Assembly: GCA_950097015.1 (NCBI GenBank)
Contig: CATNEN010000039.1
Span: forward strand, 20,026,001 to 20,090,000
Origin: Macrostomum hystrix
Lineage: Eukaryota > Animalia > Platyhelminthes
Reading direction: 5' to 3'
DNA: 64,000 bases
The notes beneath the pieces are model-generated. The model had not been told where the DNA came from, searched no databases, and saw nothing but the letters and a program-made list of their open reading frames with translations. Below are positions 6,535 to 63,000 of this stretch, piece by piece. Each line of letters opens with the position of its first letter. The first letter of the stretch is position 1. Made by a program: the position numbers and the translations under genes.

Positions 6535-9500
6535 ATGTTATTCCAGAGTATGATTATTGACAATGTTAAAGTTCTGGTTAACTATGACAAGACATGCATC
6601 TGCAAGCTAAATTCTAGCCAGCACATTTCTAATGGCTTTGTTAAAAATGGGGTAAGTATGCAGTTATTATTTAATGTATAATTATGTGCTCTGATATAAA
6701 TTTTCTTAGCAGAAGTATCTAAAAATTGTCTTCTCATTGCAGATAGTTTATGCATCTACAGACCAAAATGGGCAAGTCTATCTGGCCTGCTCCATTGTTT
6801 TGACCAACACAAGTTCACTATTATCATCAATTAGCATACCGAATTTTTTGTTAAATAAACTACAATTTAAAGCTGACGATTTTGTAAGCAGAAAGTCTTT
6901 GCTTTGTTATAAAATTTAATAATACAAGAAAAATATTATAGTACATTGATCTCTTTGGTTTGGTTTTAGATCACATTGTCCATCCTAGATCCAAGCACGA
7001 TTCCACTGCTCTCCTCAGTGTCATTAGATGTGTCATCATTTGGTTTGGACTTACTGGTATGTGGATATATAGATATTGACCATGTGTTTAAGTCTATTAC
7101 AAATGTTTTAAGTAAATTCTCTTTGTTATCTGCAATTGCAGCGCAACAATGAGACCCAGCTTGAGCAGAGCTTTCTATTGCAGTGCTCATTCGTCTACTT
7201 GAACATGCCGCTGCCAGTTTGGTGCGGCAATCAATTAGTATATTGCGTCGTTGATAATTTTCATCCAATCAGCATTGAGAGTCGTTGCGGCAGATTAGAT
7301 ATCAATACTACTCTGCATTTGAACTGCAGACAGCATGGCCGGGCTAGTCCTGGCAAGGCTGTGGCATTTAACAAAGGATTAGCACCAGACTCTACAGCGA
7401 CAAGTTCCCATCGTAACTGTGACACTGCGGCGTTAGTTTCAACTAGACTTGATGACAGTGACGTGATTGGCGGTGCAGTTAACTGGCTGCCTAGATTTAT
7501 TTTGCCCCTAGTTGATTTCATCTGCCGCTGGTTGCTGGGCTACGGTATCGGATTAGCCCAGCTGTTGCGTTTGCGAGCCGGTTGTAGGCGCTGTTTGAAA
7601 CGTGTCACAATTGGGCCAGTATTATTGTCGCCACTCGGTACCAGAGTTGGATTTCAACGACCTCTATTACTGCAGGCGAGTTTTACTTGAGACAAAGACG
7701 CACTTAACGTGCAATACTGTTTAGCGTATATTATTTTACTAAATTGATTATTCTACTGTTAAACACTAAACATCATGAATAAATATGCCTCGAAAAAAAA
7801 CAATACAGGTTCGACCAATTTCTGAGGCTGAGACACTATTGGTATTGGCAGAGCCAAACAGCTGTTTAGTAAATCCACGCCATCTACCATTGTCAAGCCA
7901 AGACAGTTCCGAACCTCGCTGGTGTCTAGTCCAAGTCCAATCATTGGGTTTGCGAGATCTAGCCGATTCTTCAGATAACAATGCCAAATCAAATGAGGGT
8001 CCACTGCTTCTTAAACTACTGCCTAGCGACTCGGTGCCTATCGATTGCCTAACAATTGCGCCGTCTACCGCCGCAGCTATTGGTCTAGCCAGCGGCGCGT
8101 GGGTTCACTTGTCTCGTCCGCTACTTTCAACTGAGAATAATTCAACCGAGGCGGCAATTTTCAACGGTTGTATTCGACTTAAAGGGTTGCGACTGATCGG
8201 CTCCTCTAGCAGCTTGAATGTTAGTTAGCTCTCATTTTTTCGATAATTGGTGTGTTTACATTTTACGTCCCTAAAGATTATCCAGTTTTTTTTCGCAGGC
8301 TACAAAACAAGAATTGGAGAGATTTATTAAAACGCGCACAGTCGACAATCCTGCCCTGGTTTTGCACAATCGAAAGTTAGCTTTTGTTGGTGAGTCATCG
8401 TTAAATAAGAAATTGCTTGCAAATACACGTTTTTACATCTTGAATTTCATAATGATACCATCGTAAATAATACTACTTACAGCCTCGGACGGTACACGTC
8501 ACGCCTGCTTCACTGAGTTGCTTTTCAACTCAAACGGACGCTCTCAGTCGTTAAAAGAATCTAATCAACAGCAGCAACCGTTGCCATGCGCTCTGCTCTG
8601 TCGCGAGTTGAGTCCAAAGTTAAGCATTACTCTCATTAGTGAGTCGTCAGTGAATTCCTTGGATACCAAAAATGAGGATCTTCAAATGCCGGACTGGCTA
8701 AGTGATGTTCTGGATCCTCTAATTACGAGTTTAATGCGTCAATTTCTTAGCGCTATTGTCCAAGGTTCCAATATTCGGCTAAATTATCTTGCACTGCTCA
8801 GAGACGATAATAGCTCTGGTGCTTCCGGTAAATCTGCTCTACTGCGTAGTTTCGCTATTAGATTGCGTGACAACGGTTTCTACGCCGGCGATCCCGTCGA
8901 TTGTCGACGCTTGACCCGGCTAGAATTCGACTCGGCGCGAAAGCGACTGTGGCGAATGGGCCGTCTGGCTGCGGCTAGAGCGCCGGCCTGCCTACTGCTA
9001 GATAATCTTGACGCTGTCTGTGCGCCTATCGAAGACAACATTATTGGCACCGGGGTCGAGGTTGGTGACTAGTCGTGCACTCTTGATTTTGCTCTTTGTG
9101 TATGGGGCGAATATTTCCTAGTAGTAGCGTCCGGTGTGGAAATTCTCCCTGACTATAAAATAAAGATTTCCGCTGACAATACATTGTGTCAACGAATTCG
9201 TTTAGCAAACAAATGGATATGTCCATAACCTATAAAGTAAAAAATTCCATAAACTATAAAGTAGAGATTTCCACAAACTATAAAGTAGAAATTTATAAAC
9301 TATAAAGTGGAAATTTCCATAAACTATAAAGTGGAAATTTCCATAACCTATAACGTGGAAAATTCCATAAACTATAAAATGGAAATTTCCATAAATTATA
9401 AAGTGGAAATTTCCATAAACTACAAGTGGAAATTTCCATAAACTATAAAGTGGAAATTTCCATAAACTATAAAGTGGAAATTTCCATAAACTTGAAGATC

Positions 9501-12500
9501 TGAAAACTTGAAGAATGTGGAAGACTTGAAAATAAAATGAAGATCACGAATTCATGAATTAAGCTAAAATTCTAAACTTCGTTTAAGCAACATGTTTTGC
9601 AAAATCTATTTAAAAAACAGCATCGCATCTGCTTCCAAACAAGTTATAAACATTGAAATCTGAAAAGTAATGTAAAAAGTTCCTATCTTGCTAGTTAGTT
9701 ATTTTCTTGACAATTTGCCTTAAATTAATTTTCTAAAAAAAAAACAAAATGTCCCATCCTTTTTTGTGGTCATTGAAAGCTATATATGAGTCATATAGCA
9801 TCGAAAAACGGTATAGACTTAGTTCCTTTCTGCATTCGCACCAAAAATATTAATAGTCGACGCGGTAGCTGTATTGTATAAATTTGTAATATCCTAGAGG
9901 TTGTAGCCTAGTGGTTAGAGCGTCGCAATCACGACTCGAAGGTCGGGGGTTCGATTCCCGACTCCACTGGAATGATTTGTGTATTTTAGCAAGACACTTA
10001 ACTCTGCATTGCTTCAGTTCACCCAGCTGTTAAATGGGTACCAGCATCAGCTGGGATAATTGAAGGTGGTTGTGGCGTCCCCCCCAGGCCCAGTCCATGG
10101 ACTGAACAGCCGTACGCAGCCCTTCAGATGCGCTAACGGTCTAACGGTCTACCAGACTAAGGGTTGGTCACAGTCAGTCAGTCTGCTCTAAGTGAAATAT
10201 ACTGTGCACAGTGCACACATACGCCATATAGCTTTGTGTTCAACTGCATATGCGCCACTCTTATCTACTTCTTTTGCTCATAGTCAAGCCCTACGCTCGC
10301 AGGTTTCTATTCTAGAGGTCAGGAAATAAGGTTCGTAATACACTGAAGATATGTTAATTCTTTGCCTCTGTGCTAAGCACCGACTCTTCTGTGTCTCTCT
10401 AATTCTGTTCTGTTCTAGTTTAGTTTCTATTGCTGTTGGAACCTAGCTACACTAGGTTAGTTGCGTTTGCTCTGGTAAATTAATAACTTGTCAGTAGCTA
10501 TGCAGCTTTTTTTAAAGCTTTTAACCGGGCGCAAAAGTACAATTCGTAGTTATATATTGTATACTTTCCTGGGTGTAATGCATGACACATCATTAGTCCT
10601 GTACTAGGTGTAATGACCAATCATTAGTCCTGCACTGGGTGTAATGACCAATCATTAGTCCTGTACTGGTTGTAATGACCAATCATAAGTCCTGTACTGG
10701 TTGTAATGACCAATCATTAGTCCTGCACTGGGTGTAATGACCAATCATTAGTCCTGCACTAGGTGTAATGACCAATCATAAGTCCTGCACTGGGTGTAAT
10801 GACCAATATTAGTCCTGTACTGGTTGTAATGACCAATCATAAGTCCTGTACTGGTTGTAATGACCAATCATTAGTCCTGCACTGGGTGTAATGACCAATC
10901 ATTAGTCCTGCACTGGGTGTAATGACCAATCATAAGTCCTGCACTGGGTGTAATGACCAATATTAGTCCTGTACTGGTTGTAATGACCAATCATTAGTCC
11001 TGCACTGGGTGTAATGACCAATCATTAGTCCTGCACTGGGTGTAATGACCCATCATTGGTCAGCAATCTATGTGTTATCGCGTAACAAAACAGTAAGTAA
11101 CAGTAACAGTTTGTAACAAAACACAAATATCTCACTGCAATTCTGTCCAGGTTCACCAGCTGCGCCTCTGCCACTTAGTACGAAGCCTATTGAAATGGAT
11201 ACGTCACCAACCAGGTGTCATGCTATTAGCCACATCGACTGGTCAATTGAATGCTCAACTAATTGACTCAGCTACCGGGCAGTGCTTATTTGATTCTGAC
11301 ACTAGATTAGATATTCGTTTAAATCCAACCGATGCTATGCGCCAATTGTTGTCAAAATCTGGCGACGGTTTAGACTTCTCTAACAGGTGTTTAACAATTG
11401 GCGAATATTCTCGCTGCAGTCACATTCTGGCCTATTGCCAGCCGGAATTAGCTGAAAAACTCAATTTGGATGTCACTCTAGGCGCTGTTCGACAGGTTAA
11501 GGATGAATGCGATCCGGCTAGGGCTAGACTGGCGCTGGAGTATGATCAGGTATGTTTGAGCCGCTGCAAGCGCAGAAATTCAGAAATCAATGTTAATCCT
11601 GAGTGGGGAATCGATTCCAAATCCCTAACTGTTCAATTCTAAATCCCCAACAGTTTGATTGCAAATCCCTAGCTGTTCGATTCCAAATCCCTAACTGTTC
11701 GCTTCTAAATCCCCAACTGTTCGATTCCAAATCCCTAACTGTTCGTCTCCAAATCCCTAACTGTTAGATTCCAAATCCCTAACTTTTCGTCTCCAAATCC
11801 CTAACTGTTCTATTCCAAATCCCTAACTGTTCGATTCCAAATCCCTAACTGTTCGACTCCAAATCCCTAACTGTTCGATTCCAAATCCCTAACTGTTCGC
11901 TTTCAAATTCTGTTCGATTCCAAATCCCTAACTGTTCGATTCTAAATCCCTAACTGTTCGACTCCAAATCCCTAACTCTTTGATTCGATATCCCAAGCTT
12001 TTGATTTCGAATCACAAAACTGCATTTAAACCGCAATTGACAATTTTAATCCCAAAACCCTTTTCGATTTCCAATCCTAAAAACTTCGCCTTACGCAGAT
12101 CTGCGGCCTAGACTCAGCTAAGACAGTTCTAGAGCGCGCCATCATTTGGCCACTTCGTTTTCCTCGCCTTGTTCAACGCGTTCGCGGAGTCGCCGCCTCT
12201 GCCGCAGACGCCTCCGTTCAAGTTGCCACAGCCGGCGTGTTGCTAACCGGGCCATCCGGATGCGGCAAATCCCTCCTGGCTATGGCTCTGGCTCGCAGAC
12301 TCCGCCTTCGCCTGCTGGCTGTGCGCGGACCAGAACTGCTTAGTAAATTTGTGGGCGCCAGCGAACGAGCCGTTCGAGACTTGTTTGCCAAGGCAAGACG
12401 ACTGCGACCGTGTCTCGTGTTTCTAGATGAGGTTTGCTGGCGAAATGTTATTCTTAATTATTAATTACACGGTCATTTGGTTACGAATAACCCACTAGCC

Positions 12501-13718
12501 CTTCAGTTAATTAGTCATTACTCTTGTAGTCTGGTCATACTCTTCAACCATTCATTCTAGTCTGGTCATTACTCCTCAATCATTCATTCTAGTCTGGTCA
12601 TCACTCCTCAATCATTCATTCTAGTCTGGTCATTACTTCTCAATCATTCATTCTAGTCTGGTCATCACTCCTCAATCATTCATTCTAGTCTGGTCATCAC
12701 TCCTCAATCATTCATTCTAGTCTGGTCATTACTCCTCAATCATTCATTCTAGTCTGGTCATCACTCCTCAATCATTCATTCTAGTCTGGTCATCACTCAA
12801 TCATTCATTCTAGTCTGGTCATTACTTCTCAATCATTTATTCTGGTCTGGTCATCACTCCTCAATCATTCATTCTAGTCTGGTCATTACTTCTCAATCAT
12901 TCATTCTAGTCTGGTCATTACTCCTCAATCATTCATTCTAGTCTGGTCATTAATACTCAAGCATTCATTCTAGTCTGGTCATCACTCCTCAATCATTTAT
13001 TCTGGTCTGGTCATCACTCCTCAATCATTCATTCTAGTCTGGTCATTACTTCTCAATCATTTATTCTGGTCTGGTCATCACTCCTCAATCATTCATTCTA
13101 GTCTGGTCATTACTTCTCAATCATTCATTCTATTCTGGTCATTACTCCTCATTCATTCATTCTGTACTGGTCATTTCTCCCCTATTTTTCTGCTCCCAAA
13201 AATAGGTGGACGCCCTGGCTCCCAGACGAGGCAACGACAGCACAGGTGTCACAGATCGAGTTGTCAATCAACTGCTCACCGAATTAGACGGCCTTGACAC
13301 GGACGGTCTGGCTGGCATCGCTCTTTTAGCTGCGACAAATCGTCCAGATCTAGTCGACCCGGCCCTGCTTCGTCCAGGCCGCATCGGTCTGCGAGCCAGC
13401 TGTCCGCAGCCCGAACGTGACGATCGGCGAAGCATTCTAGCGTCACTGCTGACTGCTGACGGTTGCATCGAGGCAGCCAATGATCAAGATCTATTAGATT
13501 GCCTTGCCGACGCCACCGAGGGCTATTGCTCGGCTGATTTCAACGCTCTTCTGTTAGCCGCCGCAGTAGAAACTAGCGAAGGTTGCCGATACGGTCGACG
13601 CGAGCTGACTTCGGCTTTAGATAAAGTTCGGCCATCGTTGCTTTCGTCTAGCAATGTTGGCAATCTAACTGCCGGTTTGGCCGCACTGCAGCCTGGTCGG
13701 CGGTTGATGTTTGCTTAA
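6535..13718 (+). CDS. PEX1: Peroxisome biogenesis AAA ATPase PEX1 (~1070 aa, 10 exons)
   Basis: Exons approx. 6535-6651, 6743-6883, 6970-7056, 7142-7675, 7809-8219, 8299-8389, 8483-9060, 11151-11549, 12099-12431, 13206-13718. N-domain-like [22 protein letters not shown]. Degenerate D1 (GASGKS, LLLDNLD). Canonical D2 ([26 protein letters not shown]). PEX1 signature [25 protein letters not shown] and [17 protein letters not shown]. Confidence 0.9.
9225..9491. repeat. Intronic minisatellite, ~24-bp unit (TTTCCATAAACTATAAAGTGGAAA)
   Basis: About 11 tandem copies in PEX1 intron 7. Confidence 0.9.
9899..10182 (+). mobile_element. tRNA-derived SINE with CORE-like domain, (CAGT)n tail
   Basis: A box TAGCCTAGTGG and B box GGTTCGATTCC. 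CORE-like GCAAGACACTTAAC...CTGTTAAATGGG. Several further copies in the window. Confidence 0.85.
10569..11060. repeat. Intronic minisatellite, 31-bp unit (GTAATGACCAATCATTAGTCCTGCACTGGGT)
   Basis: About 15 tandem copies in PEX1 intron 7. Confidence 0.95.
11611..11995. repeat. Intronic minisatellite, 22-bp unit (TCGATTCCAAATCCCTAACTGT)
   Basis: Tandem copies in PEX1 intron 8. Confidence 0.95.
12525..13175. repeat. Intronic minisatellite, 32-bp unit (TCATTCATTCTAGTCTGGTCATYACTCCTCAA)
   Basis: About 19 tandem copies in PEX1 intron 9. Confidence 0.95.
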
Positions 13719-15122: not shown

Positions 15123-18100
15123 ATGCTGCGACTAGCAGTTGCACCATCGGGCGCATCGGCTGGCAATTCCATCGTTGTCGCCTGTAGACGCTGTCTTCAG
15201 TCAATGGCTGCGCCGGTGACCTCGCCGTCTCGCCGACTAATTGCCATCGCTTCGATTAGTCGTCAATCGCGCATTGTTTCAAACTCGTCACCTAGTCTAA
15301 TGTTTTTGCCTATGACGCCGACGCGTTGCTATGCAACCACAATGGACATTCTGCGCACCTGGTTCACCGAAGGTCCGGAAGCCGCGGCGCCGTCGCAGCC
15401 GTTGGCAAATAGCCAATTGGACTCTACAGGCGGTTTCGCTGCGTCATCAGCGGCTACGCCGCCTCCCCCATCGTCGCCTACATCGTCATCGTTCTTCGTG
15501 GACGAAGGCGACGCGACAATCGAGGTGGGGATTCTTAATAATAAAAAAAATAATAATTGCAGGAGGGCTGCGGGCAACGGCACATCATTTGGTGACCCGC
15601 AGCCAGCAAGGAGGCAATTCTGCCCATTTTGCTGACTCCTGAGCACACTCACACAGGTGTGTACATCTGCCGTCTTTCTCATCTTCTGGCAGTGTACACT
15701 CTCACTGTGCCTTGGAGGTTGGCCCCCAGGGCGTAGATTGCACAAATAAATATGGCCTCGCCGTGGAATCGAACTCAGAAACCTTGGCGCGAGAGACAAA
15801 CGCGTTAACCGCTCTGCCACCGACACCACCCCCCCGGTGGGGATTCTTGCTTTCGTGTTATAAAAAATCCTTTTTTGAGACCTCTGCCTCCTTTGTTTGG
15901 TTCAGGAGCTGGTGGAAGGCTCGTCAGCTGACGTGCTAGCCTCGTCCCTGATCGAGCCAACCTTCTCTAGCCTGGGCCTCGGCACCAGCTTCTCACCCGT
16001 TAGCCTGCAATTGAAACTATTGGAGACTCTGCACGTGACCCTGGACACACCCTGGTGGCTGTGCGCCATCCTAATGGGTATCACTGTGCGCCTAGTCATC
16101 CTGCTGCCCAACATGTACATGCAGAGGGTTATAAGAGTGGACTCTCCGCGCTTCCTGAGGATTGTCAATTTTTTTGAGCGCGTTAGATTCTTTAGCCGAT
16201 CCGGCAATATGCAGGAGACGCTGCGATTGCAGCAGGAGGTAATTTTATGCTCGCTTCTATGTTCTTGTGCAAATTTCTGTGTCTTAATGTGGATAAGTTT
16301 CCGCCGAGAAGATGGAGTGTCTGTAGAAGAGATTTGGCGCCCTCTGAATTGAGTGGGCATCCACTGAAGAAAGTGAGTGTCTACTGAAGGGACTGGGCGT
16401 CTACTGAAGGGACTGGGTGTCTACTAAAGGGACTAGGTGTCAACTGAAGGGACTAGGTGTCTACTGAAGGGACTGGGCGTCTACTGAAGGGACTGGGTGT
16501 CTACTGAAGGGACTGGGTGTCTACTGAAGGGACTGGGCGTCTACTGAAGGGACTGGGTGTCTACTGAAGGGACTGGGCGTCTACTGAAGGGACTGGGTGT
16601 CTACTGAAGGGACTGGGTGTCTACTGAAGGGACTGGGCGTCTACTGAAGGGACTGGGTGTCTACTGAAGGGACTGGGTGTCTACTAAAGGGACTGGGTGT
16701 CTACTGAAGGGACTGGGCGTCTACTGAAGGGACTGGGCGTCTACTGAAGGGACTGGGTGTCTACTGAAGGGACTGGGTGTCTACTGAAGGGACTGGGCGT
16801 CTACTGAAGGGACTGGGTGTCTACTGAAGGGACTGGGTGTCTACTGAAGGGACTGGGCGTCTACTGAAGGGACTGGGTGTCTACTAAAGGGACTAGGTGT
16901 CAACTGAAGGGACTAGGTGTCTACTGAAGGGACTGGGCGTCTACTGAAGGGACTGGGCGTCTACTGAAGGGACTGGGTGTCTACTGAAGGGACTGGGTGT
17001 CTACTGAAGGGACTGGGCGTCTACTGAAGGGACTGGGTGTCTACTCAAGGGACTAGGTGTCTACTGAAGGGACTGGGCGTCTACTGAAGGGACTGGGCGT
17101 CTACTGAAGGGACTAGGTGTCTACTGAAGGGACTGGGTGTCTACTGAAGGGACTGGGTGTCTACTGAAGGGACTAGGTGTCTACTGAAGGGACTGGGTGT
17201 CTACTGAAGGGACTGGGTGTCTACTGAAGGGACTAGGTGTCTACTGAAGGGACTGGGTGTCTACTCAAGGGACTGGGTGTCTACTGAAGGGACTGGGTGT
17301 CTACTGAAGGGACTGGGTGTCTACTGAAGGGACTGGGTGTTTCACTAAAGCAAGTTACTGTATGCAGTGAAGCAGAGCTCCAAAAAAGCAGTTTTATGTT
17401 CTCAATGCTCCGCAGGCTCTGGACGAGTTTCCCGAAATTTTTGACGAGAAAAAATTAAAGAAGAACCGCAACCGCATGCTTGGCATCTTTGCCAGCAATT
17501 TCTTTGTCATGAGCTTCGCCCAAATAGCCAGCATCAGGGCCCTTTATCGAGCTGCCGAGCTGCCAGTCGAAAGCTTTCAACAGGGCGGCCTGCTCTGGCT
17601 AACAGATCTGACCTCCATTGATCCCTACTTTATTCTACCGACGGCAATCACCAGCCTATTAATGCTAAATGTGCATCAGTTCTTTAAGAATACTTTGCCG
17701 TCTAGTCAGGCCTCGGTAATTATCTTCTTTGACTTGAATTTTTTTATTCTAGATTTTTATGTTCTAACGGAAAATTATTTTGATTGATTTTTGTTTTTTT
17801 CAGATGTCGCAAGTGAAGCCTTTGGCTTACACTCTATTGCCAGCCTGCGCGTTCACCTTTCTAATTAATTTTCCCGGCGCTAATTTGTTATACTTCTTTG
17901 CCACCGGTTGCACCGCTCACCTGTTGCATCAGTTAAACAAAACTGCTAAAGCTAAGGCATTCTGGAAGGCTAAGATTGGCCTGCCGCCAGTTGAAGAGTT
18001 GCCGTTTAACAGCGCCCAGATCAATAACGCCGCTATGGATCGTATTAGGAATCAGATAATGCCGGCTGTTAATAATGACGGTTATCGGGCTGCAAGAATG

Positions 18101-18319: not shown

Positions 18320-19337
18320 TACCATAGTTCAGTGGACTACTGAATCAGGGACCATTGTTCAGTGGACTACTGAATCAAGGACCATTGTTCAGTGGTCTCC
18401 TAAATCAAGGACCATTGTTCAGTTGTCTCCTTAATCAAGGACCATTGTTCAGTGGTCTCCTAAACCAAGGACCATTGTTCAGTTGTCTCCTAAATCAAGG
18501 ACCATTGTTCAGTGGTCTCCTAAATCAGGGACCATTGTTCAGTTGTCTCCTAAATCAAGGACCATTGTTCAGTGGTCTCCAAAACCAAGTACCATATTGT
18601 TCAGTTGTCTCCTAAATCAAGGACCATTGTTCAGTGGTCTCCTAAACCAAGGACCATTGTTCAGTGGTCTCCTAAATCAAGGACCATTGTTCAGTGGTCT
18701 CCTAAATCAAGGACCATTGTTCAGTGGTCTCCTAAATCAAGGACCATTGTTCAGTGGTCTCCTTAATCAAGGACCATTGTTCAGTGGTCTCCTAAATCAA
18801 GGACCATTGATCAGTGGTCTCCTTAATCAAGGACCATTGTTCAGTGGTCTCCTAAATCAAGGACCATTGTTCAGTGGTCTCCTAAATCAAGGACCATTGT
18901 TCAGTGGTCTCCTTAATCAAGGACCATTTTTCAGTGGTCTCCTTAATCAAGGACCATTGTTCAGTGGTCTCCTAAATCAAGGACCATTGTTCAGTGGTCT
19001 CCTTAATCAAGGACCATTGTTCAGTGGTCTCCTTAATCAAGGACCATTGTTCAGTGGTCTCCTAAATCAAGGACCATTGTTCAGTGGTCTCCTTAATCAA
19101 GGACCATTGTTCAGTGGTCTCCTTAATCAAGGACCATTGTTCAGTGGTCTCCTTAATCAAGGACCATTGTTCAGTGGTCTCCTTAATCAAGGACCATTGT
19201 TCAGTGGTCTCCTAAATCAAGGACCATTGTTCAGTGGTCTCCTAAACCAAGGAATATAGTTCAGTGGTCTCCTAAACCAAGGACCATTGTTCAGTGGTCT
19301 CCTAAACCAAGGAATATAGTTCAGTGCTCTCCTAACT
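18320..19337. repeat. 30-bp minisatellite (GGACCATTGTTCAGTGGTCTCCTWAATCAA) between OXA1L and ATP5F1A
   Basis: About 33 copies. Produces spurious (GPLFSGLLNQ)n ORFs. Confidence 0.98.
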
Positions 19338-20234: not shown

Positions 20235-23724
<3,490 letters not shown>

Positions 23725-24514
23725 GGCCCCCCTTCGAGCATAGAGTTAAAAAACAGAAGAGAGTAAACGGCAAACTTTGAGAACTCCGCGAGACCGGCTA
23801 GCTAGATCGTGGACTGAAATACTTTGACTAAATAAATTTGTTGCTAGACCTTTTTTGTGGGACTTTTGTCTTCTTAGTTCGTATCAAGAATTCTAATATT
23901 ATATTTATTCTCTAAGCAGTTTCTTTTCAAAGATAGCTTATAATGTTTTGTAGAACATCCTAATGTGACTACTCACATTTGTTTTAGTTCTAAGTAGGCG
24001 TGTCGGAAACCGTGTGTAGTGTTTATTGAAATCCTATAACAAAAATAAACTGATTATCCTGTAGCGACCGTGTCCTTCGAATCCTAGCTCGTAAGCCTAA
24101 TTTAGCACAATATAAAATTATTTTCGTGTAGGCAAATCTTCATGTTAGCAGTTTTCTTTATTTGTATGGCCGCGCAGCTAAGAATAGAATGACAATGGGT
24201 TAACAGAAAAAAATAAATTTATTCGTTCAAAAATCTATCAGCCTTTTTCAACCACAAACAGAAAATCGTCGACCGAAAAAGTATGCGATTTGAAGAAATA
24301 TTAATCCGAAAATCTTTTTGTCTGGCGCGCACAAATTTTTTTTCGCTTGGCCTTTTCACTTCATTATTATTATTATTATTATTTTCCGTATTCAGTTACG
24401 TCTATTAAGGAAAAATGGTAAAAAGTGCTTCTCTCAGTCAAATTAAAAAAGTCAGTCTGGTGAGTCTTGTTAGCCTAGCTCACAGATACTAAATACCCTA
24501 AATGCCCTACCCTA

Positions 24515-24645
24515 CACGGAAGAGATAAGACAGGGGATAGATGAGACACGGAAGAGATGAAACAGGTGTTGGAAGGGGCAACGGGCCGGATTTAGGAGCT
24601 TCGAGGGCCGCATCTGGCCCGCGGGCCGGAGTTTGCCGACCCCTG
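24515..24645 (-). mobile_element. Partial hAT MITE (same family as 32285-32671)
   Basis: Reverse complement of CAGGGGTCGGCAAACTCCGGCCCGCGGGCCAGATGCGGCCCTCGAAGCTCC. Confidence 0.9.
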
Positions 24646-32284: not shown

Positions 32285-32671
32285 CAGGGGTCGGCAAACT
32301 CCGGCCCGCGGGCCAGATGCGGCCCTCGAAGCTCCCAAATCCGGCCCGTTGCCCCTTCTGACATCTACAGTGTCCTGTTTCATCTCTCTCGTGTCTAATC
32401 TCTCCCGTGTCTCATCGCTCTCGTATCTAATCTCTCCCGTGTCTAATTTCTCCCGTGTCTAATTTCTCCCGTGTCTAATCTCTCCCGTGTCTAATCTCTT
32501 CCCTGTCTTATCTCTCCCGTGTCTCATCTCTCTCGTGTCCCATCTTTCCTGTGTCTAATCTCTCCCGTGTCTCATCTCTCCCCTATCTCATATTTATACA
32601 GTTAATGCGGCCCGCTGTCGTCTTTTAGGTTCTCTCTTTGGCCCGCCAGCAAATAAGTTTGCCTACCCCTG
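32285..32671 (+). mobile_element. Complete hAT MITE
   Basis: TIRs CAGGGGTCGGCAAACT / AGTTTGCCTACCCCTG. Perfect 8-bp TSD ATCTAAAC. Subterminal GGCCCGC motifs and an internal (TCTCATCTCTCCCGTG)n tract. Confidence 0.95.
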
Positions 32672-35972: not shown

Positions 35973-41937
<5,965 letters not shown>

Positions 41938-46787: not shown

Positions 46788-47679
46788 GTCTGTGGGATCT
46801 GGGATCTTGAGGGTAGGAACAGCTGACAGGCTGTGGAATCTTGAGGGTAGGAACAGCTGACAGGCTGTGGGATCTTGAGGTTAGGAACAGCTGACAGGCT
46901 GTGGGATCTTGAGGTTAGGAACAGCTGACAGGCTGTGGGATCTTGAGGTTAGGAACAGCTGACAGGCTGTGGGATCTTGAGGTTAGGAACAGCTGACAGG
47001 CTGTGGGATCTTGAAGGTAGGAACAGCTGACAGGCTGTGGAATCTTGAGGTTAGGAACAGCTGACAGGCTGTGGGATCTTGAGGTTAGGAACAGCTGACA
47101 GGCTGTGGGATCTTGAGGGTAGGAACAGCTGACAGGCTGTGGGATCTTGAGGGTAGGAACAGCTGACAGGCTGTGGGATCTTGAGGGTAGGAACAGCTGA
47201 CAGGCTGTGGAATCTTGAGGGTAGGAACAGCTGACAGGCTGTGGGATCTTGAGGGTAGGAACAGCTGACAGGCTGTGGGATCTTGAGGGTAGGAACAGCT
47301 GACAGGCTGTGGGATCTTGAAGGTAGGAACAGCTGACAGGCTGTGGGATCTTGAGGGTAGGAACAGCTGACAGGCTGTGGGATCTTGAGGGTAGGAACAG
47401 CTGACAGGCTGTGGGATCTTGAGGGTAGGAACAGCTGACAGGCTGTGGAATCTTGAGGGTAGGAACAGCTGACAGGCTGTGGAATCTTGAGGGTAGGAAC
47501 AGCTGACAGGCTGTGGGATCTTGGTCGAGGGTAGGAACAGCTGACAGGCTGTGGAATCTTGAGGGTAGGAACAGCTGACAGGCTGTGGGATCTTGAGGGT
47601 AGGAACAGCTGACAGGCTGTGGGATCTGGGATCTTGATTGTAGGAGGCTGTGATATCTTGAGGGTAGGAACAGCTGACA
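46788..47679. repeat. 37-bp minisatellite (GGCTGTGGGATCTTGAGGGTAGGAACAGCTGACA-type) just after the DNMT2 stop
   Basis: About 24 near-identical copies starting ~40 bp after the TGA. Confidence 0.97.
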
Positions 47680-49779: not shown

Positions 49780-50130
49780 GTTCCTCGATGAGGCAGTTGA
49801 ATCCGTGTTGCCTAGCGATTGACACATCCGCGTCACATTTGGACGCTGAAACGCGCGGTCGTCGGCTCAAAGGGTCGTCAAATCGTTTGTTCCCAAAAAA
49901 TATCGCCTGCAGCTCCTGTACGTGATGGTAAAAACTTTTTTTACTTTGGTGTATAACCACGCGCGCGTACATGTAAACGACAAAAGGCGCGGGACGTCAG
50001 AGCGTAATTCAGTGAACTTTGTCATAAAGATGCATTAGCCAGACAAAAAATGCGTTGCCATGAAAAAAAGCGCAAAATTTTTTTGAAATCTTCGACGATG
50101 TAGGTGCGATATCGATACGCCCTAAAACAA
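49780..50130. promoter_or_regulatory. CpG-rich putative promoter upstream of the abLIM-like unit
   Basis: Non-coding CpG-dense island with GGCGCGGGA (E2F-like) and GACGTCA (CRE-like) at ~49986-50000, followed by a CpG-depleted AT-rich tract. Confidence 0.4.
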
Positions 50131-52209
50131 CTAAAGTTCTCTATGCAAAGGCGAGAAATTTTTTACCCTCTTTTAGACTCAGTCGGAAATGTAGTATATT
50201 GTTGTTTACCATGCAACCGTCTGAAACTATATTCAAAACTAAAAAAATATTGTAAAGCCTTCTAAAGTAATGAGGAGGTGCGCCCCGTCGGAAATGAGAG
50301 GATGACAGAAATCCAAAAGGGCACCTAGTTTGTGCAGTACGATTTTGAGTTTATATAAATTCCCTTGTATTGTATTCCAGTAAGCTAGCCACTGCTTCAC
50401 TGATATTTTATAGCTGCTTTTGAGAAAGGTATTTCGGTTTCAAATATGCCTTTTTGGGGTTAAAGATTACGTTTGCCGTAACGCCAAATTTTTGTTGTTC
50501 AATGTTTTTTAAATTCTGAATTCTAGGAAATTGACAAAATATGTTCATAGAGCGCCTCAAGGTTACGATGGGTTCCTGACAGCCTTTGTTGCAGTATAAA
50601 CAATATTTAACACATATAATAGACCATTTACCTGATACTAAAGTACTGATTAGTTTAATGCCCATCCAAATTTTTATAATAAGCACAGCGCAATTTGTAT
50701 TAGGGAGCTAAGGGTAGGCAGGCTTACTGTGCATTTCCCGCTTTCTGTGGCAGTGGCTGTACCTCCGCTCCTTCATCTGACTATTTACATAGTTCAGTTA
50801 TATTATTATTATTATTATTATTGAGGTGCGCACGCCGATTGGGTGCTGATTTTTTTATTTATTTTATGTTTGAGGCTGAACAATTCGGTTTTTTTAAAAG
50901 AAGGCGATAGGAAAACAGGAGCATGCATAAGATTAATTTTAGGTGATTAAAATAAAAAAAACTAATTTTTTAAATAAACAAAGCCATTAAAACAAAAAAT
51001 GTAATATTCAAATTTAAAGAGAAAAAAACAGACTGAATGAAGAATAGGCCTAGCTATTGTGTTTTTGCATTCTAACTATGGGCCTCAGGGCAGTGGCTTT
51101 TTTATCTAGCTTTAAGTATGCTTTCTATGAAGTCCACAAAACTTTCTGTTAAGTCTGTGCTTTCCTGTGCCATAAAATACACAATTTTGTCATCAGCTGT
51201 TAGGCTTGATCGAGATTTCGAACAGTACCTTCCACTTTCTCTATGAATTTATTTCTAATTGGAACATAAATCGACCAATCACATCTAAAGTTATAGGCCT
51301 AACCATAAGTATTTTAATATATTGAATACCTATCTATCCATCCTCCTATTGATTTTTGGCCTTGTGTTTCGATGGAACAGTGATACAAATGGTGCAAATA
51401 CTTCTATTGAACTGAGCATTTTAGTCAAGCCACATGAGTTTTTGACACGTTACCAGGTCCAGTAGGCCTAGGCTAAATTGTAGACTATTTTTATTACTGT
51501 GGCTATAAGATCTGCTTATTGGCATGGAATATACTGTGTTAATAGACTAATGATAACTCTACACTACTGTACAGTACAGGACATTCCTGCATTTGCATGT
51601 TCTAGCTTTAATGCCTATGTCATTGTTGGGTGATTTCTAAACTTATTATTTATTAGTGCATTTTAATTAAACTATTAAGCTATAAGGCCCACATATTTTC
51701 ATTTACATGATATATCTAACTGATCTAATAGTTATAGGCTATTATTATATATTTAATACAATTTTATAATGACACTCACATTTTTTTGGATTGGGTCCTG
51801 AATTTTTTCAAGGGTGTTAGGATTACATATTAGCACTTATTGTATGATAAGTAGGCTAGGTGCTTTTTCAAAACATTATTTAAATTTTAGATTTAAATTT
51901 TAATTGAAAAAACTACTAGTCCCTAAAATCCAAGAAATGTCTTGCAAGGACAGGTTTGAATTATAAAATACTAGAGTCTAGTTGACCACAGTCCTGTTTC
52001 TATGGCTATTGCCTAATATATATATTAAAAGTCTAGATTGTTACATTTTTTTAATATTATGTTTCATACTTGAACTTCAATCCTTAAAATATTATGCATT
52101 TTTTGTTTTATTTATATTCTTCACATTAAAAGCCTTAACCACTATATCAAGAAACAAGTTGAAAATTTATTTCTCAATATTTTAAATAGCTAGGCTATTG
52201 TGTCTATTG

Positions 52210-52509
52210 CAGGGGTTGGCAAACTCTAGCATCTAGCCCACTGGCCTGATGCAGCCCTCAAAGCTACCAAATACAGCCCATTTCCCCTTCCTAGACACAT
52301 AGTTAGGCCTAAGGTATCCTGTTTAGTGTTTCATCTCTCCCCTGTCTCATCTTCTAACCCCTGTCTCATCTCTCACTGTGTCTCAACCTTCCCGTGTCTC
52401 GTCTTTCCCCATCATATTTCTATGCCGATGTCGTCTTTTCGGTTCTCTCTTTAGCCCTAATAATAAGTTTTTTATATACTAAGCTAGCTAATATGTTTGC
52501 CGACCCCTG
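52210..52509 (+). mobile_element. Degenerate hAT MITE (32285 family) with CpG decay
   Basis: Termini CAGGGGTTGGCAAACT ... TGTTTGCCGACCCCTG, colinear with the 32285 copy. Confidence 0.85.
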
Positions 52510-52728
52510 CTTTATAGGCACCAAAATTTTACTTAAAAAATCAATTTCAATACTTGGCAATAGTCAATTACTCTTTTAAAAGAAATAATCTTTCTTTTTC
52601 AGTGTGAAATTTCCTAACGACATTAAACTAGAAGGTAAAATTTCATTACCAAATCCTGCAGTTTGAAGGCCTACTTCAGCCACAGTCAGTCAGTGAAATA
52701 GCACTATTAATTTAGCCAACCATCTAGC

Positions 52729-55068
52729 ATGAAAGTGCTCTGCCTTGTCTGCAGCAAGCGCTGCAAAGGCGAAGTTCTGCGCGTACAGGATCGCTATGTG
52801 CACAAAGGCTGTTTCGCCTGTTGCCAGTGCAGGCGCAGTCTGGAACGCGGCGGCTTCTTTCTGCGCGACGGCAAGCTTTACTGCCCGGACGACTTCGCCC
52901 GACTACACGGCGTCCGATGTCGAGGCTGCGGCGGCGCCGCCACCGGCGAGGTAGCCACCGCCATGGGCGCCACCTTTCATCCGGCCTGTTTCCGCTGCGA
53001 AGGCTGCCAGGCGCCGTTCAGGTTGGCGTGGAATCCTGATATTGTCCAGACAGGAGGGATTGGACGGGACACATATAAGACACGGGATAGATAGATAGTG
53101 GAGGGATGGAGACACTGGAGGATAGAAAACGAATAGGTAGATGGATAACAGCGGAGAGAAGACCCAGTTTATCTAGTTTCCTCTCGCCACCTCCATCCTC
53201 CCAATCCGGCAGTCCCGGAGACCGAGTGGTCCTCTGGCCAGAGCGAGACGCCTTCCTGTGCCGCGACTGCGCCCAAACTGAAACTGCCCTGCGCCAGCCG
53301 CTGTCCATCGCCACGGACAACAATGGCCTTAGCAACGAGGAGCCTAGCATTGCGCCGAAACTGGCGGCCCCGGTGTCGGCCGAGGCGTCAGGTAGCAGCC
53401 GTCGCTATAGCAACGACGATTTCGATAGTTCAACTCGACGCGATCTAGTCGGCTCTGTGGACGGCCTTAGCAACGGCGGTGCTCGCAGCGTTATTAGCAA
53501 CGCCGGTGGTGGTGTCAGCGTTACGCCGGCTACGTCAGCTAGTCGAAGCGTCGCCGCGTCTCGTAGCGGACCGCAGCGGAGGACGCGGTCCTACCTCAGC
53601 ATCCAGTCCGAGATCGAGTCCCGACTGCCGCCGAGTGATCGCTACCGACGTGGTCTCTCGCCCTGCGGCTCGGTTCGTTCGCTCAGTCCGCGACGACAGC
53701 TGCGCCAGCAGCAACAGCAGCAGCAGCAGCACTTTCACGTGCCTCAACCGCAGCAGACTCACCCGCCGACTTCGCGATCGACAATGTCGATAACAACGGC
53801 TCCGTCAACGCCGGCCTCCCTGGCTTCGATGTCGCGTCGATCGCGCAGCGTCGCCGGCGGCGCCTCTCGACCCGGCAGCATCGGCGGCGGTCGTCGACGA
53901 CGCTCCCCGTCGGTTGGCGGCGGCGGCGCAGTCAGCGCCGACGAAGACGAGAACGATCCTGTGCTTCTAAGCCAATTCCCGGGCGCATCCAAGCCCGACC
54001 TAAGCCGGCCGGCGCCAATTGAACGCGACGACTGGCCCTGCCCGCCGTTGGCCGCCCTGCTGCCTGATCGACGCGGCCGGCAGCGAAATCGACAGCGCTC
54101 TCCGGAGCCGGAGACTCCCAGCGGCGATCGCTCGTCGACTAGAGCTACTCGCCAGCTGGTCGCAGGTCAGTTGGAACTGGGCTGCCTGGGCTCCGCTCTA
54201 TTGCTCTCCGGTGACAGCGGCATGGGCGGCGGTGTCGGGCGCAGCTCCGGCGGCTTGTCGATGCGATTCTCGCCATCAATTGGTGAAGATTGATTCATAG
54301 CTGACCACTTGATTCTTCCCCGTTCCTTAATCTTAGAACTCGATTCTTCCCAGATCCCAAATCTTAGAACTCGATTCTTCCCAGATCCCAAATCTTAGGA
54401 CTTGATTCTTCCCAGATCCCAAATCTTAGAACTCGATTCTTCCCAGATCCCAAATCTTAGGACTTGATTCTTCCCAGATCCCAAATCTTAAAACTCGATT
54501 CTTCCCAGATCCCAAATCTTAGGACTTGATTTTTCCCAGATCCCAAATCTTAGGACTTGATTCTTCCCAGATCCCAAATCTTAGAACTCGATTCTTCCCA
54601 GATCTCAAATCTTAGGACTTGATTCTTCCCAGATCCCAAATCTTAGAACTCGATTCTTCCCAGATCCCAAATCTTAGGACTTGATTCTTCCCAGATCCCA
54701 AATCTTAGAACTCGAGTCTTCCCAGATCCCAAATCTTGGGACTCGATTCTTCCCAGATCCCAAATCTTAGAACTCGAGTCTTCCCAGATCCCAAATCTTA
54801 AGACTTTGATCCACGGAACTTAGTCTTGCTTTAATTCGTCGTCATTTAGGGCTAAAAGTTTTTGGAAGCCAAGTTAAGAAAACCAATTATCTGCTGTCGC
54901 ATTTTAACTATCACAGACTCTTCGCTGCATAATCAACTTCTGCAACAGCGGCCAGACAACGAGACAACGTCGGAGTTGGGCGATCGCCGATCATTGTCTA
55001 GCGCGGCGTCGCCCCGACCCGGCTACACAATGGGACTGTTGGCTAGCAGCGCTGGAATTTCCGACTAA
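52729..55068 (+). CDS. Actin-binding LIM (abLIM/UNC-115)-like protein, short form (~504 aa)
   Basis: Exons 52729-53021, 53213-54282, 54917-55068. Two LIM domains (CLVCSKRCKGEVLRVQDRYVHKGCFACCQC...YCPDD; CRGC...FHPACFRCEGC...LCRDC). abLIM/dematin-like LSQFPGASKPD..PIERDDWPCPP. Confidence 0.85.
54308..54808. repeat. Intronic 31-bp minisatellite (GATTCTTCCCAGATCCCAAATCTTAGRACTY)
   Basis: About 15 copies in abLIM-like intron 2. Confidence 0.97.
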
Positions 55069-55732
55069 TTAAAAAGTGGCGTGTAAAATTATAGACTTAT
55101 TTTTGTTCAGAACGCTACTCAGATACTCTCGGCATATTGGAACCTTTTGGACAGGTGTCATTCACGCATTCGTTGCTGTAAGATATAGTCGAGATTCTAT
55201 TTTTAGAAAACTCAAAATCGGGGAATCCCATTGAAGAGTTACTCATTAAAAACGCCTTAAATCATAGAAATTAACTTTATCGAAGATCCTGGAAATTCCC
55301 TTTGCTGGAAATCCTGGTATTTCTATTTTTGGAAGTCTAATATAGGAATTCCCCTTGCTCGGGAATGATAGAAGTTTATTTTTTTCAGAAAACCCACCGT
55401 GTCAGTGCTCGGGAAATCCCGTTTTAAGAAATCCCCTCCCTGTCACTTTCTCACAATTTTCGTCTTGACTTTTGGTATTCATGACTCATTCTATTTTCAT
55501 TCTTCAAATTTTATGTAGCTGTACCTGTACCCATGTCTTAGTTTATTTTGTCCTATTAACTGTTGTTTTTGCCTCAGCTACCTTAGAAACATTTGCAAAT
55601 TTATTTTTTTCTATAAAAACTCTGCGTTAATTTTATCTGGTTTCTGTTTATTATGAAGCAGATGATTTCGCTACTTTCTTTAATCAGCTTTTATATTTTC
55701 CTTTCGAAAATTATAACATGCACTTTCCAACA

Positions 55733-56345
55733 ACTTCAGGCAAGTAAAACTTCAGGGAAGTGAAACTTTAGGGAAGTGAAACTTCAGGGAAGTGAAACTT
55801 CAGGAAAGTGAAACTTCAGGAAAGTGAAACTTCAGGAAAGTGAAACTTCAGGGAAGTGAAACTTCAGGAAAGTGAAACTTCAGGGAAGTGAAACTTCAGG
55901 AAAGTGAAACTTCAGGAAAGTGAAACTTCAGGAAAGTGAAACTTCAGGGAAGTGAAACTTCAGGGAAACTTTAGGGAAGTGAAACTTCAGGAAAGTGAAA
56001 CTTCAGGAAAGTGAAACTTCAGGAAAGTGAAACTTCAGGAAAGTGAAACTTCAGGAAAGTGAAACTTTAGGGAAGTGAAACTTCAGGGAAGTGAAACTTC
56101 AGGAAAGTGAAACTTCAGGGAAACTTCAGGGAAGTGAAACTTTAGGGAAGTGAAACTTCAGGAAAGTGAAACTTTAGGAAAGTGAAACTTTAGGAAAGTG
56201 AAACTTTAGGAAAGTGAAACTTCAGGAAAGTGAAACTTCAGGGAAGGTGAAACTTCAGGAAAGTGAAACTTCAGGAAAGTGAAACTTCAGGAAAGTGAAA
56301 CTTCAGGAAAGTGAAACTTCAGGGAAGTGAAACTTCAGGGAAGTG
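55733..56345. repeat. 17-bp minisatellite (GTGAAACTTCAGGRAA-type)
   Basis: About 35 copies downstream of the abLIM-like gene. Confidence 0.97.
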
Positions 56346-57533: not shown

Positions 57534-58231
57534 ATTAAGGTCAATCAATCAGTCTGATCAATAACTTGTGATATGCTTAATCCTCTGTGACATATTTATT
57601 TAAACCCATCTAACGTTATACTGAAGTATTGCGTAGCGCTTTTAAGATACAGAATTGATTATAATTGATGTCTAGTCTAGCCAGGTTAATCTAGTTGCTA
57701 AGCAATCATAGTCATTCCATCTGCCGCTGTGTTTGACTGGCGAGGTTATTTTATCAGCTTGTTTGTGTATTTTTGTCCAGTTTTTGCTAGCTAAACTATA
57801 TTCAGATATTTTTGTTAATTTTCTTTTGCGAATACCGTAGCAGATTTAGTATCCTGGCTAGGCAATTTATTTTGAAACCCTGAATATGCATTCTCTGTTG
57901 TATTTGGAATAATTAATTTATATTGCTTTTGCAATGCTATTTCCCACGTAAAATTCCCCACTCAATACCAACTTTCTCGCCGCGCTAAAACTTCTTAAAT
58001 GAAATAGATATTTATTTATGTTAAATATTGTCTCTTCTGCTTCTTATTTTCCTTAGCGAATAAAGAAGAGAATGTGGTGAAAGAAAAATTGGAGAGACAA
58101 TGTGTGTTCATTGATTCTTCTTTGTTTACTTGCTATGTGGATAATAATAATAGACACCCAGAACTGACACATAAAGACACAGGACAGAAAGAAAGACAAT
58201 AAGAACTGATAGACACTCAGAAGAGCCCTTT

Positions 58232-58612
58232 GGACACCCTGAGGACAGGCAGAGAGACACCCAAACCTGACTTTAGGACACTCTGAGGACAGGCAGAGAG
58301 ACACCCAAAACTGACTTTAGGACACTCTGAGGACAGGCAGAGAGACACCCAAAACTGACTTTAGGACACTCTGAGAACAGGCAGAGAGACACCCAAAACA
58401 GACTTTAGGACACTCTGAGGACAGGCAGAGAGACACCCAAAACAGACTTTAGGACACTTTGAGGACAGGCAGAGAGACACCCAAAACTGACTTTAGGACA
58501 CTCTGTGGACAGACAGAGAGACACCCAAAAACAGGCTTTAGGACACCCTGAGAACAGACAGAAAGACACCCTGAACAGGCAGAGAGACACCCAGGACAGA
58601 CAGAAAGATACC
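58232..58612. repeat. 44-bp minisatellite (GGACACTCTGAGGACAGGCAGAGAGACACCCAAAACTGACTTTA)
   Basis: About 8 copies. Confidence 0.92.
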
Positions 58613-60052: not shown

Positions 60053-63000
60053 ATGGCAACCTCGACGTCAACAAACGTAACCGCTATGGACGACTCGGTG
60101 GCAGTTGCGGCAGCTGCTGCGTCAACTGGACCGAAGATCAACTTCAGTCGTTATCAGAGCATCGAGCGGATTCACACCGCAAGTCGCAACGAACGAAGGA
60201 GGACCAATGTAAGCCGAGGGCCCTCTTAATTTATGCATCAATTAGGGTCCAAAAAACTGACGGGAATAATTTGAGCGTTTTTTGAGAATCTACTCTTAAT
60301 TGGCTGCTCAAAAACTTCGCTCGCTCAGTTGTTGTAGCCTAGCGGTTAGAGCGTCGGACTCCACTGAAAATTTTGTGCCTTTCAGCGCCTTTATTATTAT
60401 CATTAAAACTAACTCGGCATGATAGCCCGCCAATGAGGACAAAGCACAATATCCGATAGGAGGAAGACACAGGCTAAAAGCTAAAAGCAGACACCGGGTC
60501 CTTTCCACGTGCTCAAAAAGGGAGAATTGACGAATTCCTCCGATAAGAGATAGTATTGCAGTCCTCAAACAAGAGCAGAGCATGCTGAGCAGCTGATGCT
60601 CGAAGATCCCGCTGACACACTCGGCGACCTACCGTCGTCACCGTGCTGAAACAGCCGCGTTCGACGCTGCAAAAAGCTGCCACCGCGGCTGGCCTCATTT
60701 CAGACCGGCCAACAGCGGCCGGCAGTCGAGGCTTCCAGGCGAAGATGCTTCAGCAGAGGATTGCAGATGTCGGCGTCCAACACTGGCACAAGATGCAAAC
60801 AAATTTTCGCTTCTCTCTCCAGTGACGTCATCGGTGCTGACGCCAGGTTTGTCGGGCCGTTTGGCAGCAGAAATTGTAAGTGTCGCTTTTTTCCTCCATA
60901 GCACCGCAATTCCATTCAGTGCAGATGGGAATTTCTCATCGAACAACCGCTTCGAATTCCAGTGCTGTACTTCGATTTTGTCGCTTCCGGCAGGTAAGAA
61001 ATGTGATTATCGCTTGAAAACTTTCAAAATTTCTATCGAAAGTTCGGCAGTTCGAATCTGCAGATAGTGTTTGAACTGCAGACTAGGCTTTATAGTACAA
61101 GAACCTCTCTAACAAAGCAAAAGGCTTCTCTGTTTAGTAGTTGCTACCCGAGATTCACTCGCCTCACCTTTTGCGAGTGCAGCATCTCAAGTTTCATGTA
61201 TCTGAGCCCATTTCTGAGCGCCTAACGAGCGCGTAGCAATAAAAGTACTTTTATAAGAGCGATAGAACCTCGTCAGACATCCGACAAAGAAAGTTTGACG
61301 AGAGAAAACAGCTAGGCATGATCGGGTCGATGGCTTGTTCCTAATTCCCTATGATCTCTAGTTATGTCTTGACTATACTAATGTGTCTTGGCAGACTTTT
61401 GCATCTGGGTTTTAGCAAAGACTGTACACTTGTTTTAAAACTGGAACAGCATATTGTGGCTTGTATTGAATTAGCAGTGATGAAGATGAGAGTCTGCAGG
61501 TCGGTGACCTCCGTCTCGAACACATACTGGGCCTTATCTCATCTCTCCCCAGTCTTATCTCTCCCCAGTCTCATCTCTCCCCAGTCTCATCTCTCCACTG
61601 TGTCATCTCTCCACTGTCTCATCTCTCCACTGTGTCATCTCTCCACTGTCTCATCTCTCCCCTGTCTCATCTCTCTCCAGTCTTATCTCCCCCTGTCTCA
61701 TCTCTCCCCAGTCTTATCTCTCCCCAGTCTCATCTCTCCCCTGTGTCATCTCTCCACTGTGTCATCTCTCCACTGTCTCATCTCTCCACTGTGTCATCTC
61801 TCCCCTGTCTCATCTCTCCCCAGTCTCATCTCTCTCCAGTCTTATCTCCCCCTGTCTCATCTCTCCCCTGTCTCATCTCTCCCCTGTCCCATCTCTCCCG
61901 TGTCTCATCTTTCCACTGTCTCATCTCTCCACTGTCTCATCTCTCCCCTGTCTCATCTCTCTCCAGTCTTATCTCCCCCTGTCTCATCTCTCCACTGTCT
62001 CATCTCTCCACTGTCTCATCTCTCCACTGTCTCATCTCTCCCCAGCGGCGCTCAGACTTGCTTGTCGAAGCTTCGGTGTCACGATTAGCGTCTGCTGTTC
62101 AGATTGCATATTGAATTCGTTCTGAACCCCTCTGGACAGAAGCGTCCGCAGCATCGAGACCTACCTCCAGTCGACCGTGCTGCCATTATATGGTAACACG
62201 CACAGCTCCGGTTCAGCCGTGTCGCGCCAGACAACCAGCTTTCGCGAGGAGGCCCGCCAGCTGATCAGACGAAGCGTGAACGCCGGGCCCCAGGATGCCG
62301 TTGTCTTTTGCGGCTCGGGCGCCACCGGCGCCATTCACAAGCTCATCGGCGTGCTAGAGGTCAGCCGCAAGCAGACCGTTGTTCTCTACGGCCCATTCGA
62401 GCACCACTCAAATATGCTGCCTTGGAAGGAGGCCGCCAGTCTTTGCGTCCGAGTGCCGGAGAACGCCGATGGCGGTGTCGACATGGCCTTCTTGGAGGCG
62501 CAGCTGCGGCTTCACTCAAGCAGTGGCTCTACCGACCTGCTGCTCATCGGGGCCTTCTCAGCTGCCAGCAATGTCACCGGCATCCTGACTGACACGCGCG
62601 CCGTCACCCGACTGCTGCACTCTTACGGCGCCCTGGCCGTCTGGGACTTCGCCTGTGCCGGGCCCTACGTCGGCATCGACGTTAACGCCGAGCCAGACTG
62701 CAGCTTCGACGCCGTGTTCCTGTCGCCGCACAAATTCCTCGGCGGCCCTGGCACGCCCGGCCTGCTGGTTGCTAAGCGACGCCTGTTCGGCAACGCCATA
62801 CCGCATCAGGCCGGCGGGGGCACCGTTGTCTACGTCACCAAAGACAAGCACCAATACGAAGCTGACATCGAGGTCGGTGGTAGAATAAGTAGAAGGACCA
62901 TGGGGGGATTTTAAATAGCCAAGTGCCTACTTCAAGATAGCTCCAAAAACCGAATGACCGAGTTTCTGAATCTACATTTTCCGCCCATTAGGATGAACTA

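Follow-up and report, generated by a model that had tools for sequence, protein, structure and literature searches.

Why should a single copy of a transposon lose every CpG of its 5' half and keep those of its 3' half? The question is raised by a 300-bp element in a 64,000-nucleotide stretch of the Macrostomum hystrix genome (contig 39, positions 20026001-20090000; hereafter the window), which is 44% G+C and has an overall CpG observed/expected ratio (o/e) of 0.78 with strong local swings. A preliminary description of the window, made from its letters alone, attributed the loss to deamination of 5-methylcytosine (5mC), and proposed that methylation follows genomic position rather than transposon identity and that the edge of the methylated domain falls inside the element. 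Here we examine these propositions by comparison of the element with its relatives in the genome (220,453,370 bases in 42 contigs), with its flanks, and with the gene that lies downstream.

The element and its family

The element occupies exactly the interval assigned to it in the preliminary description and is an aged, non-autonomous miniature inverted-repeat transposable element (MITE) of the hAT type (Table 1). Terminal inverted repeats are present as CAGGGGTCGGCAAACT-type ends on both strands, at 52212/52494 in this copy and at 32287/32656 in the intact copy of the window. Members of the family consist of a 5' unique part of ~95 bp, an internal array of 16-bp units of variable length, and a 3' unique part of ~75 bp, and the copy at 52210 follows the same layout with a short array. 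We assign the family to hAT because of its 8-bp target-site duplications with the consensus nTnTAnAC, a form that we take to be the hAT signature; 7 or 8 of the 8 positions match in 44 of 47 MITE copies. The family is both large and young. It comprises ~1000 copies scattered over the genome, many of them identical, with 982 genome matches to a 35-nt pattern of non-CpG positions at up to three mismatches, and at least 40 copies are 100% identical across the 68-bp 5' end that contains eight CpGs.

The two other copies in the window are far younger than the one at 52210, with 0-1 non-CpG differences, and part of the contrast between it and them is due to age alone. The internal array was left unscored, since CpG-free variants of its unit (CCCCTG, CACTGTG) occur also in intact copies and in a separate array at 61537-62043. 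The latter consists of 32 copies of the MITE's 16-bp internal unit in a CpG-free variant, and a class-V aminotransferase ORF (62177-62914) follows shortly downstream of it.

Table 1. Features of the window discussed in the text, in positions of the window
Feature	Position	Strand	Remarks
CpG-free stretch, non-satellite	2871-3924		0 CpGs vs 21.6 expected; followed by Pif1-like ORFs
CpG-free stretch, non-satellite	6103-6839		0 CpGs vs 18.6 expected; ~300 bp before PEX1 N-terminal exon
Young MITE copy, truncated to 5' part	24514-24645	-	8/8 CpGs kept
Young intact MITE copy	32285-32671	+	All CpGs kept; perfect 8-bp duplication; CpG-normal flanks
CpG-free stretch, non-satellite	36422-37110		
CpG desert	50906-52392	.	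5 CpGs vs 38.5 expected; unique AT-rich DNA
Left target-site duplication, decayed	52202-52209	+	5/8 match to the right one, 52510-52517
Aged hAT-type MITE copy, non-autonomous	52210-52509	+	300 bp; terminal inverted repeats start CAGGGG
5' unique part of this copy	52210-52285	+	0/8 consensus CpG sites left: TG, TA, CA, CT, CA, CA, CA, CA
CpG-retaining 3' part of this copy	52393-52509	+	6 CpGs vs 4.4 expected
Spliced-leader trans-splice acceptor, cag/T	52600-52603 (52602/3)	+	Transcript contigs start here after leader letters
LIM-domain gene, exon 1	about 52602/3-53018	+	First ATG, 52729, opens LIM-domain protein
LIM-domain gene, later exons	53210-54281, 54916-55256+	+	Transcript contigs

Loss of CpG sites within the element

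The seven changes previously listed for the 5' part are all seen when this part is aligned with the two other copies in the window and with copies from the genome. They are real, with two amendments: in a CGCG pair the second CpG fell to a G>T transversion rather than to a transition, and TCCGGC>TACAGC, in which the CpG transition stands, contains a C>A transversion as well. In the 5' 72 bp no CpG survives, as had been claimed: compared to the family consensus, seven of the eight sites were lost by C>T or G>A and one by G>T. The nine transition events at these sites (2 C>T and 7 G>A) affect both strands; the 7:2 excess of G>A is not significant, and it is absent from other decayed copies. Equal transition rates at CpG and non-CpG sites, which the preliminary description regarded as incompatible with its reading, were not found, as transitions changed 9 of the 16 CpG bases and none of the 36 non-CpG G/C positions (Fisher p = 3e-6). 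The 56 non-CpG positions of this segment, said to be mostly kept, carry four changes, every one a transversion. The confinement of transitions to CpG, as in a footprint of 5mC deamination, is therefore observed in this copy. It also contains two insertions, one of 7 bp and one of 12 bp.

CpGs were said to persist after ~52390; they resume at 52393, and the six found from there to 52509 are three retained consensus sites in the 3' unique part, one site of a tandem unit, and two that were newly created. Three of the four alignable consensus CpGs of the 3' unique part are kept, compared to none of eight in the 5' part (p = 0.018, or p = 0.006 for 0/8 against 3/3). Judged by its non-CpG differences (7 of 54 positions, vs 4 of 56 in the 5' part) the 3' part is no younger than the 5' part, and therefore neither gene conversion nor a chimera of two copies explains why the two differ in CpG retention.

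A CpG desert in front of a trans-spliced gene

The decayed part of the element continues a CpG desert that starts at 50906, and the element straddles the desert's edge. The last 944 bp of the desert (51449-52392), which run into the element, have no CpG at all, vs 24 expected from base composition. The left neighbour (50001-50905) is equally AT-rich, yet it contains 28 CpGs vs 29.6 expected, and therefore the depletion marks a bounded domain and is not a property of AT-rich DNA. No tandem repeat structure was found in 50906-52392, and the sequences beside this MITE copy have no homology to those beside other MITE copies; a repeat shared between flanks was thus rejected, the desert flanks being unique DNA. 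Nor was any asymmetry between TG and CA found in the deserts. A short repeat lies inside the desert at 51054-51230, and the five residual desert CpGs are located at its end and just beyond (51211-51448). High-depth transcript contigs match this repeat with several differences, and therefore other copies of it must be strongly expressed elsewhere.

The gene downstream of the element could be delimited with four public runs from two studies, which yielded transcript contigs over the exons listed in Table 1; the contigs are joined at GT..AG, and therefore the runs are transcriptomes. In three runs (X3, X5, X8) the contig starting at 52602 is preceded by ~22 letters that have no match anywhere within the 64-kb window. 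Followed by GT, the same letters occur at 20 exact places in the genome, in units that recur in tandem on contigs 15, 17 and 42, and they are a spliced leader. The spacing of leader plus GT is regular, ~11.6-11.7 kb (e.g. C17:2763-120872), so the SL RNA genes sit within a long tandem unit; single leader copies in which GC replaces GT were found on contigs 7, 24 and 38.

The element ends 93 bp, and the desert ~210 bp, before the spliced-leader acceptor. The desert thus lies in the outron or the promoter region of the LIM-domain gene, and may plausibly represent the 5' part of the LIM transcription unit. The exons of this gene between 52759 and 54300 have a CpG o/e of about 1.0-1.5. The depletion across the transcribed body that is expected of canonical gene-body methylation is not seen in the LIM gene, so the pattern is a different one.

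Does the right-hand limit of the domain really fall inside the element? The contrast of 0/8 vs 3/4 sites speaks for the edge proposed in the preliminary description, but it involves few sites (p about 0.01-0.02), and the DNA is CpG-poor again after the element: the 249 bp of 52510-52758 contain 1 CpG vs 6.8 expected (p = 0.011), before the DNA turns G+C-rich and CpG-rich at 52759. Therefore the CpG-retaining 3' part may be a protected patch of ~120 bp and not the outer limit of the domain. It is possible, if rather doubtful, that this patch is a protected core promoter with decaying or methylated zones on both sides, which would make the edge within the element the border of promoter protection. 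The renewed scarcity of CpGs downstream and the location of the patch, 93-210 bp before the trans-splice acceptor, agree with this; on the other hand, the CpG-poor stretch that follows the element is short and AT-rich, and the coding exon from 52759 is CpG-rich. A protected patch refines the explanation by a CpG-decaying domain that we favor below and does not contradict it. Across the family, the tendency of the decayed end to face the CpG-poor flank is weak (rho -0.20, p = 0.10). The copy at 52210 is the most extreme case of a decayed end facing a desert in our sample, and a similar one is L045, in which the first four sites were lost beside an upstream desert.

Minisatellites with a CpG-free unit account for most of the other CpG-free stretches in the window. 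We excluded them as evidence of methylation and discarded them as supporting domains: stretches of this kind mimic deserts and must be masked in scans for methylation footprints. They have units of 16-45 bp in up to 192 copies and are found at 10582-11061, 12527-13180, 16377-17340, 18321-19335 and 20647-21304, and further on at 37440-41237, 46800-47627, 55732-56345 and 58228-58571. Among the non-satellite stretches (Table 1), 2871-3924 and 6103-6839 are each followed within 0-300 bp by the first large ORF of a plus-strand gene (Pif1-like and PEX1, respectively). The placement of the non-satellite deserts fits a position next to gene starts, for three cases only and with partial gene models.

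Genomic position or transposon identity

The family allows for separation of the two factors. We scored 78 non-redundant loci against the consensus and computed the CpG o/e of the flanks of each; the set was made up of 30 intact copies, the 20 nearest to the decayed copy, 30 (before duplicates were removed) in which one or more of three test sites read CpA, and the copies of the window. The lower the CpG o/e of the flanks, the more CpG sites were lost by transition (rho -0.42, p = 1e-4 for the 78 loci), and the correlation is stronger with the o/e of the poorer flank among the 48 loci not selected for intactness (rho -0.65, p = 5e-7). Non-CpG divergence shows no correlation with flank o/e (rho -0.08). 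Picking of loci by sequence patterns biases the CpG states of the 5' part, and for this reason CpG/non-CpG rate ratios from that part are not used as estimates and the test was repeated on the 3' end only, the analysis of which is free of the bias. Where the downstream 500 bp have an o/e below 0.25, 15 of 32 CpG sites of the 3' end were lost by transition, vs 15 of 223 in all other copies; non-CpG divergence is 11% in the former copies vs 6-7% in the others. In three copies (L058, L065, L081) the 52-56 non-CpG positions of the 5' part are all unchanged, yet 5-6 of its 8 CpG sites are lost, and therefore the process must be fast and recent; the target duplications of L058 and L065 are perfect. 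In L051, which lies in a deep desert, all twelve CpG sites are lost. Together, the correlation with the flanks and the CpG-free unique flank of the copy at 52210 bear out the proposition that decay follows genomic position and not transposon identity, and we regard a position-dependent, CpG-specific decay as well supported.

Could the changes at 52210 have been inherited from an older subfamily, or reflect the mere age of the copy, with no regional cause? The copy is certainly old, as indicated by its non-CpG differences in both parts, its indels and its decayed target duplication, and the TG at the first CpG site recurs in other copies. However, nothing else in the genome matches its decayed 5' end at more than 78% identity. 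These changes are thus not those of a subfamily, and their fixation in an older subfamily, which had been named as evidence against a positional effect, was not found. Their combination occurs in no copy with 0-2 mismatches to the 35-nt test pattern. Age alone does not account for them either: copies with similar non-CpG divergence in CpG-normal flanks have lost 2-5 of 12 sites, and at a per-site loss of 0.25 the loss of 8 out of 8 has a probability of 1.5e-5. In addition, the unique flank is also CpG-free. We therefore consider this explanation scarcely credible.

Methylation aimed at the transposon itself, e.g. by small RNAs, and spreading from there into the flank, appears very improbable. 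Many MITE copies do reside at desert edges, and the desert adjoins the 5' side of the element in 10 cases and its 3' side in 4, but this imbalance falls short of significance (p = 0.18). CpGs persist in the majority of copies, among them the 40 or more that are identical over eight CpGs, and therefore transposon identity does not attract the decay process; in the 100 copies that match the test pattern at all 29 of its non-CpG positions, 274 out of 300 CpG sites remain intact. Moreover, very young intact copies are found inside deserts (e.g. L012 and L010), and the deserts are unique DNA and much longer than the element.

Two further observations on the family deserve mention. The CTCGAA site of the 5' part is changed in 15 of the 100 copies without non-CpG mismatch, to both TG and CA, so it has been hit recurrently; its two neighbouring CpG sites are changed in 5 and 7 of these copies, and CTCGAA looks like a site-specific hot spot. 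In six copies (L036, L042, L058, L060, L075 and L009) a CpG-free flank on one side gives way to a CpG-normal flank on the other exactly at the element. The MITE may favor desert borders, close to the starts of genes, as insertion sites, or the element itself may move such borders.

DNA methyltransferases and the probable cause of the decay

DNMT1 and DNMT3 have been lost in most flatworm models. M. hystrix encodes both: DNMT1, with pieces of the replication-focus (RFD), BAH and methylase domains, on contig 2, and DNMT3, with an ADD finger and the methylase motifs I and IV, on contig 11 (L055, C11:3924061-3927312). The maintenance and de novo CpG methyltransferases required for a 5mC footprint are thus present; DNMT2 is encoded within the 64-kb window itself. 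None of the 44 genome-wide matches to the PWWP domain lies near the DNMT3 locus, the nearest on contig 11 being at 0.93 and 1.64 Mb. The DNMT3 of M. hystrix may be devoid of PWWP, or this domain may be too diverged or too split to be detected.

The element probably sits at the edge of a ~1.5-kb domain of fast CpG decay, for which dense germline CpG methylation followed by 5mC deamination is the likely cause. The scenario we propose is as follows. A hAT-type MITE would have inserted long ago ~100 bp upstream of the trans-splice acceptor of the LIM-domain gene, at what was the right-hand margin of such a domain. Within it, CpG would turn into TpG or CpA tens of times faster than other sites mutate, and the part of the element inside would have lost every CpG as the part outside evolved at an ordinary rate. 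DNMT1 and DNMT3 would most likely be responsible, by dense methylation of germline CpGs in short domains beside the 5' ends of genes, and deamination of 5mC would then deplete these domains of CpGs.

The CpG specificity, the involvement of both strands, the lack of TG/CA asymmetry and the very high ratio of CpG to non-CpG rates all fit densely methylated germline CpGs; the same features are at odds with single-strand deamination, with repeat targeting of the RIP kind and with biased gene conversion. From them we strongly infer that the mutagen is 5mC. A CpG-specific process of another kind, such as a local deficiency of repair, deamination associated with transcription or R-loops, or selection against CpG near promoters, is unlikely. 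It could appeal to the deserts adjoining gene starts, where transcription-linked processes act. However, deamination of single strands would hit all cytosines with a strand bias; the 36 non-CpG G/C positions without a single transition argue against it, as do the balance of TG and CA in the deserts and the occurrence of both C>T and G>A, and both DNMT1 and DNMT3 are at hand.

If methylation is the cause, we infer that the promoter or the transcription unit determines where the domain lies. Tentatively, and with less confidence than in the decay domain as such, we suggest from these footprints that DNMT1 and DNMT3 of Macrostomum may confine dense germline methylation to ~1-kb domains at gene starts (outron or promoter flanks), with a border determined by the distance to the promoter, and spare gene bodies and transposons. 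Such borders would ignore sequence, so that a border may cut an inserted MITE in two. A DNMT3 with ADD but no detectable PWWP would be in keeping with an enzyme guided by the chromatin of promoters and not by gene-body marks.

Comparison with known systems

The one-directional changes C>T and G>A in a repeated element are reminiscent of fungal RIP. However, RIP acts on the duplicated length and prefers CpA, whereas the changes in M. hystrix concern CpG only, stop inside the repeat, and extend through the unique flank; mutation that spans the duplicated sequence, is confined to it and prefers CpA was not observed. Another analogy is offered by mammals, where the CpG decay of Alu and other repeats serves as a clock for methylated DNA. 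In both cases copies are compared with a consensus, and CpG transitions are more than 10 times faster than other changes. Nearly all repeat copies decay in mammals; in M. hystrix only a minority does so, in special domains.

In insects, gene-body methylation is 5'-biased and covers first exons and introns downstream of the start. Proximity to the 5' end of transcription units is shared with M. hystrix, as far as methylation can be read from CpG decay there, but in the latter the domain precedes the trans-splice acceptor. The patterns known from arthropods have been summarised in a review (PMC9246332); for free-living flatworms, the review states, no genomic pattern of DNA methylation is known. 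Methylation is not mentioned in the paper on the M. hystrix genome (PMC10468722). M. lignano, a species of the same genus, is reported to keep DNMT1 and DNMT3 and to have a low global level of 5mC (PMC11292947, PMC10658182; Wasik et al. 2015, as cited there and in PMC9246332).

With ~1000 near-identical, CpG-rich copies, the MITE family constitutes a built-in reporter, in which the same sequence decays or persists depending on where it landed. To this the present locus adds a dated internal control (a MITE with a known consensus), a mapped trans-splice site, and a reporter family that extends over the whole genome. If our reading is true, methylation is to be expected at young intact copies within deserts, but not at identical copies in other places.

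The pattern in M. hystrix can also be compared to the mosaic DNA methylation of invertebrates, as read from CpG depletion, e.g. that of Ciona, in which transposons are reportedly methylated only by virtue of their location. Common to both are the bimodal CpG content, a footprint that follows domains rather than transposon identity, and the possession of DNMT1 and DNMT3. In contrast to mosaic invertebrates, the depleted domains of M. hystrix extend over no more than about 0.7-1.5 kb and immediately precede first exons; its coding exons and gene bodies are CpG-normal or CpG-high, and it is gene bodies that form the depleted compartment of canonical mosaic genomes. The footprint points to short methylated domains beside gene starts, with gene bodies and transposons presumably unmethylated, an arrangement that would differ from the usual pattern of invertebrates.
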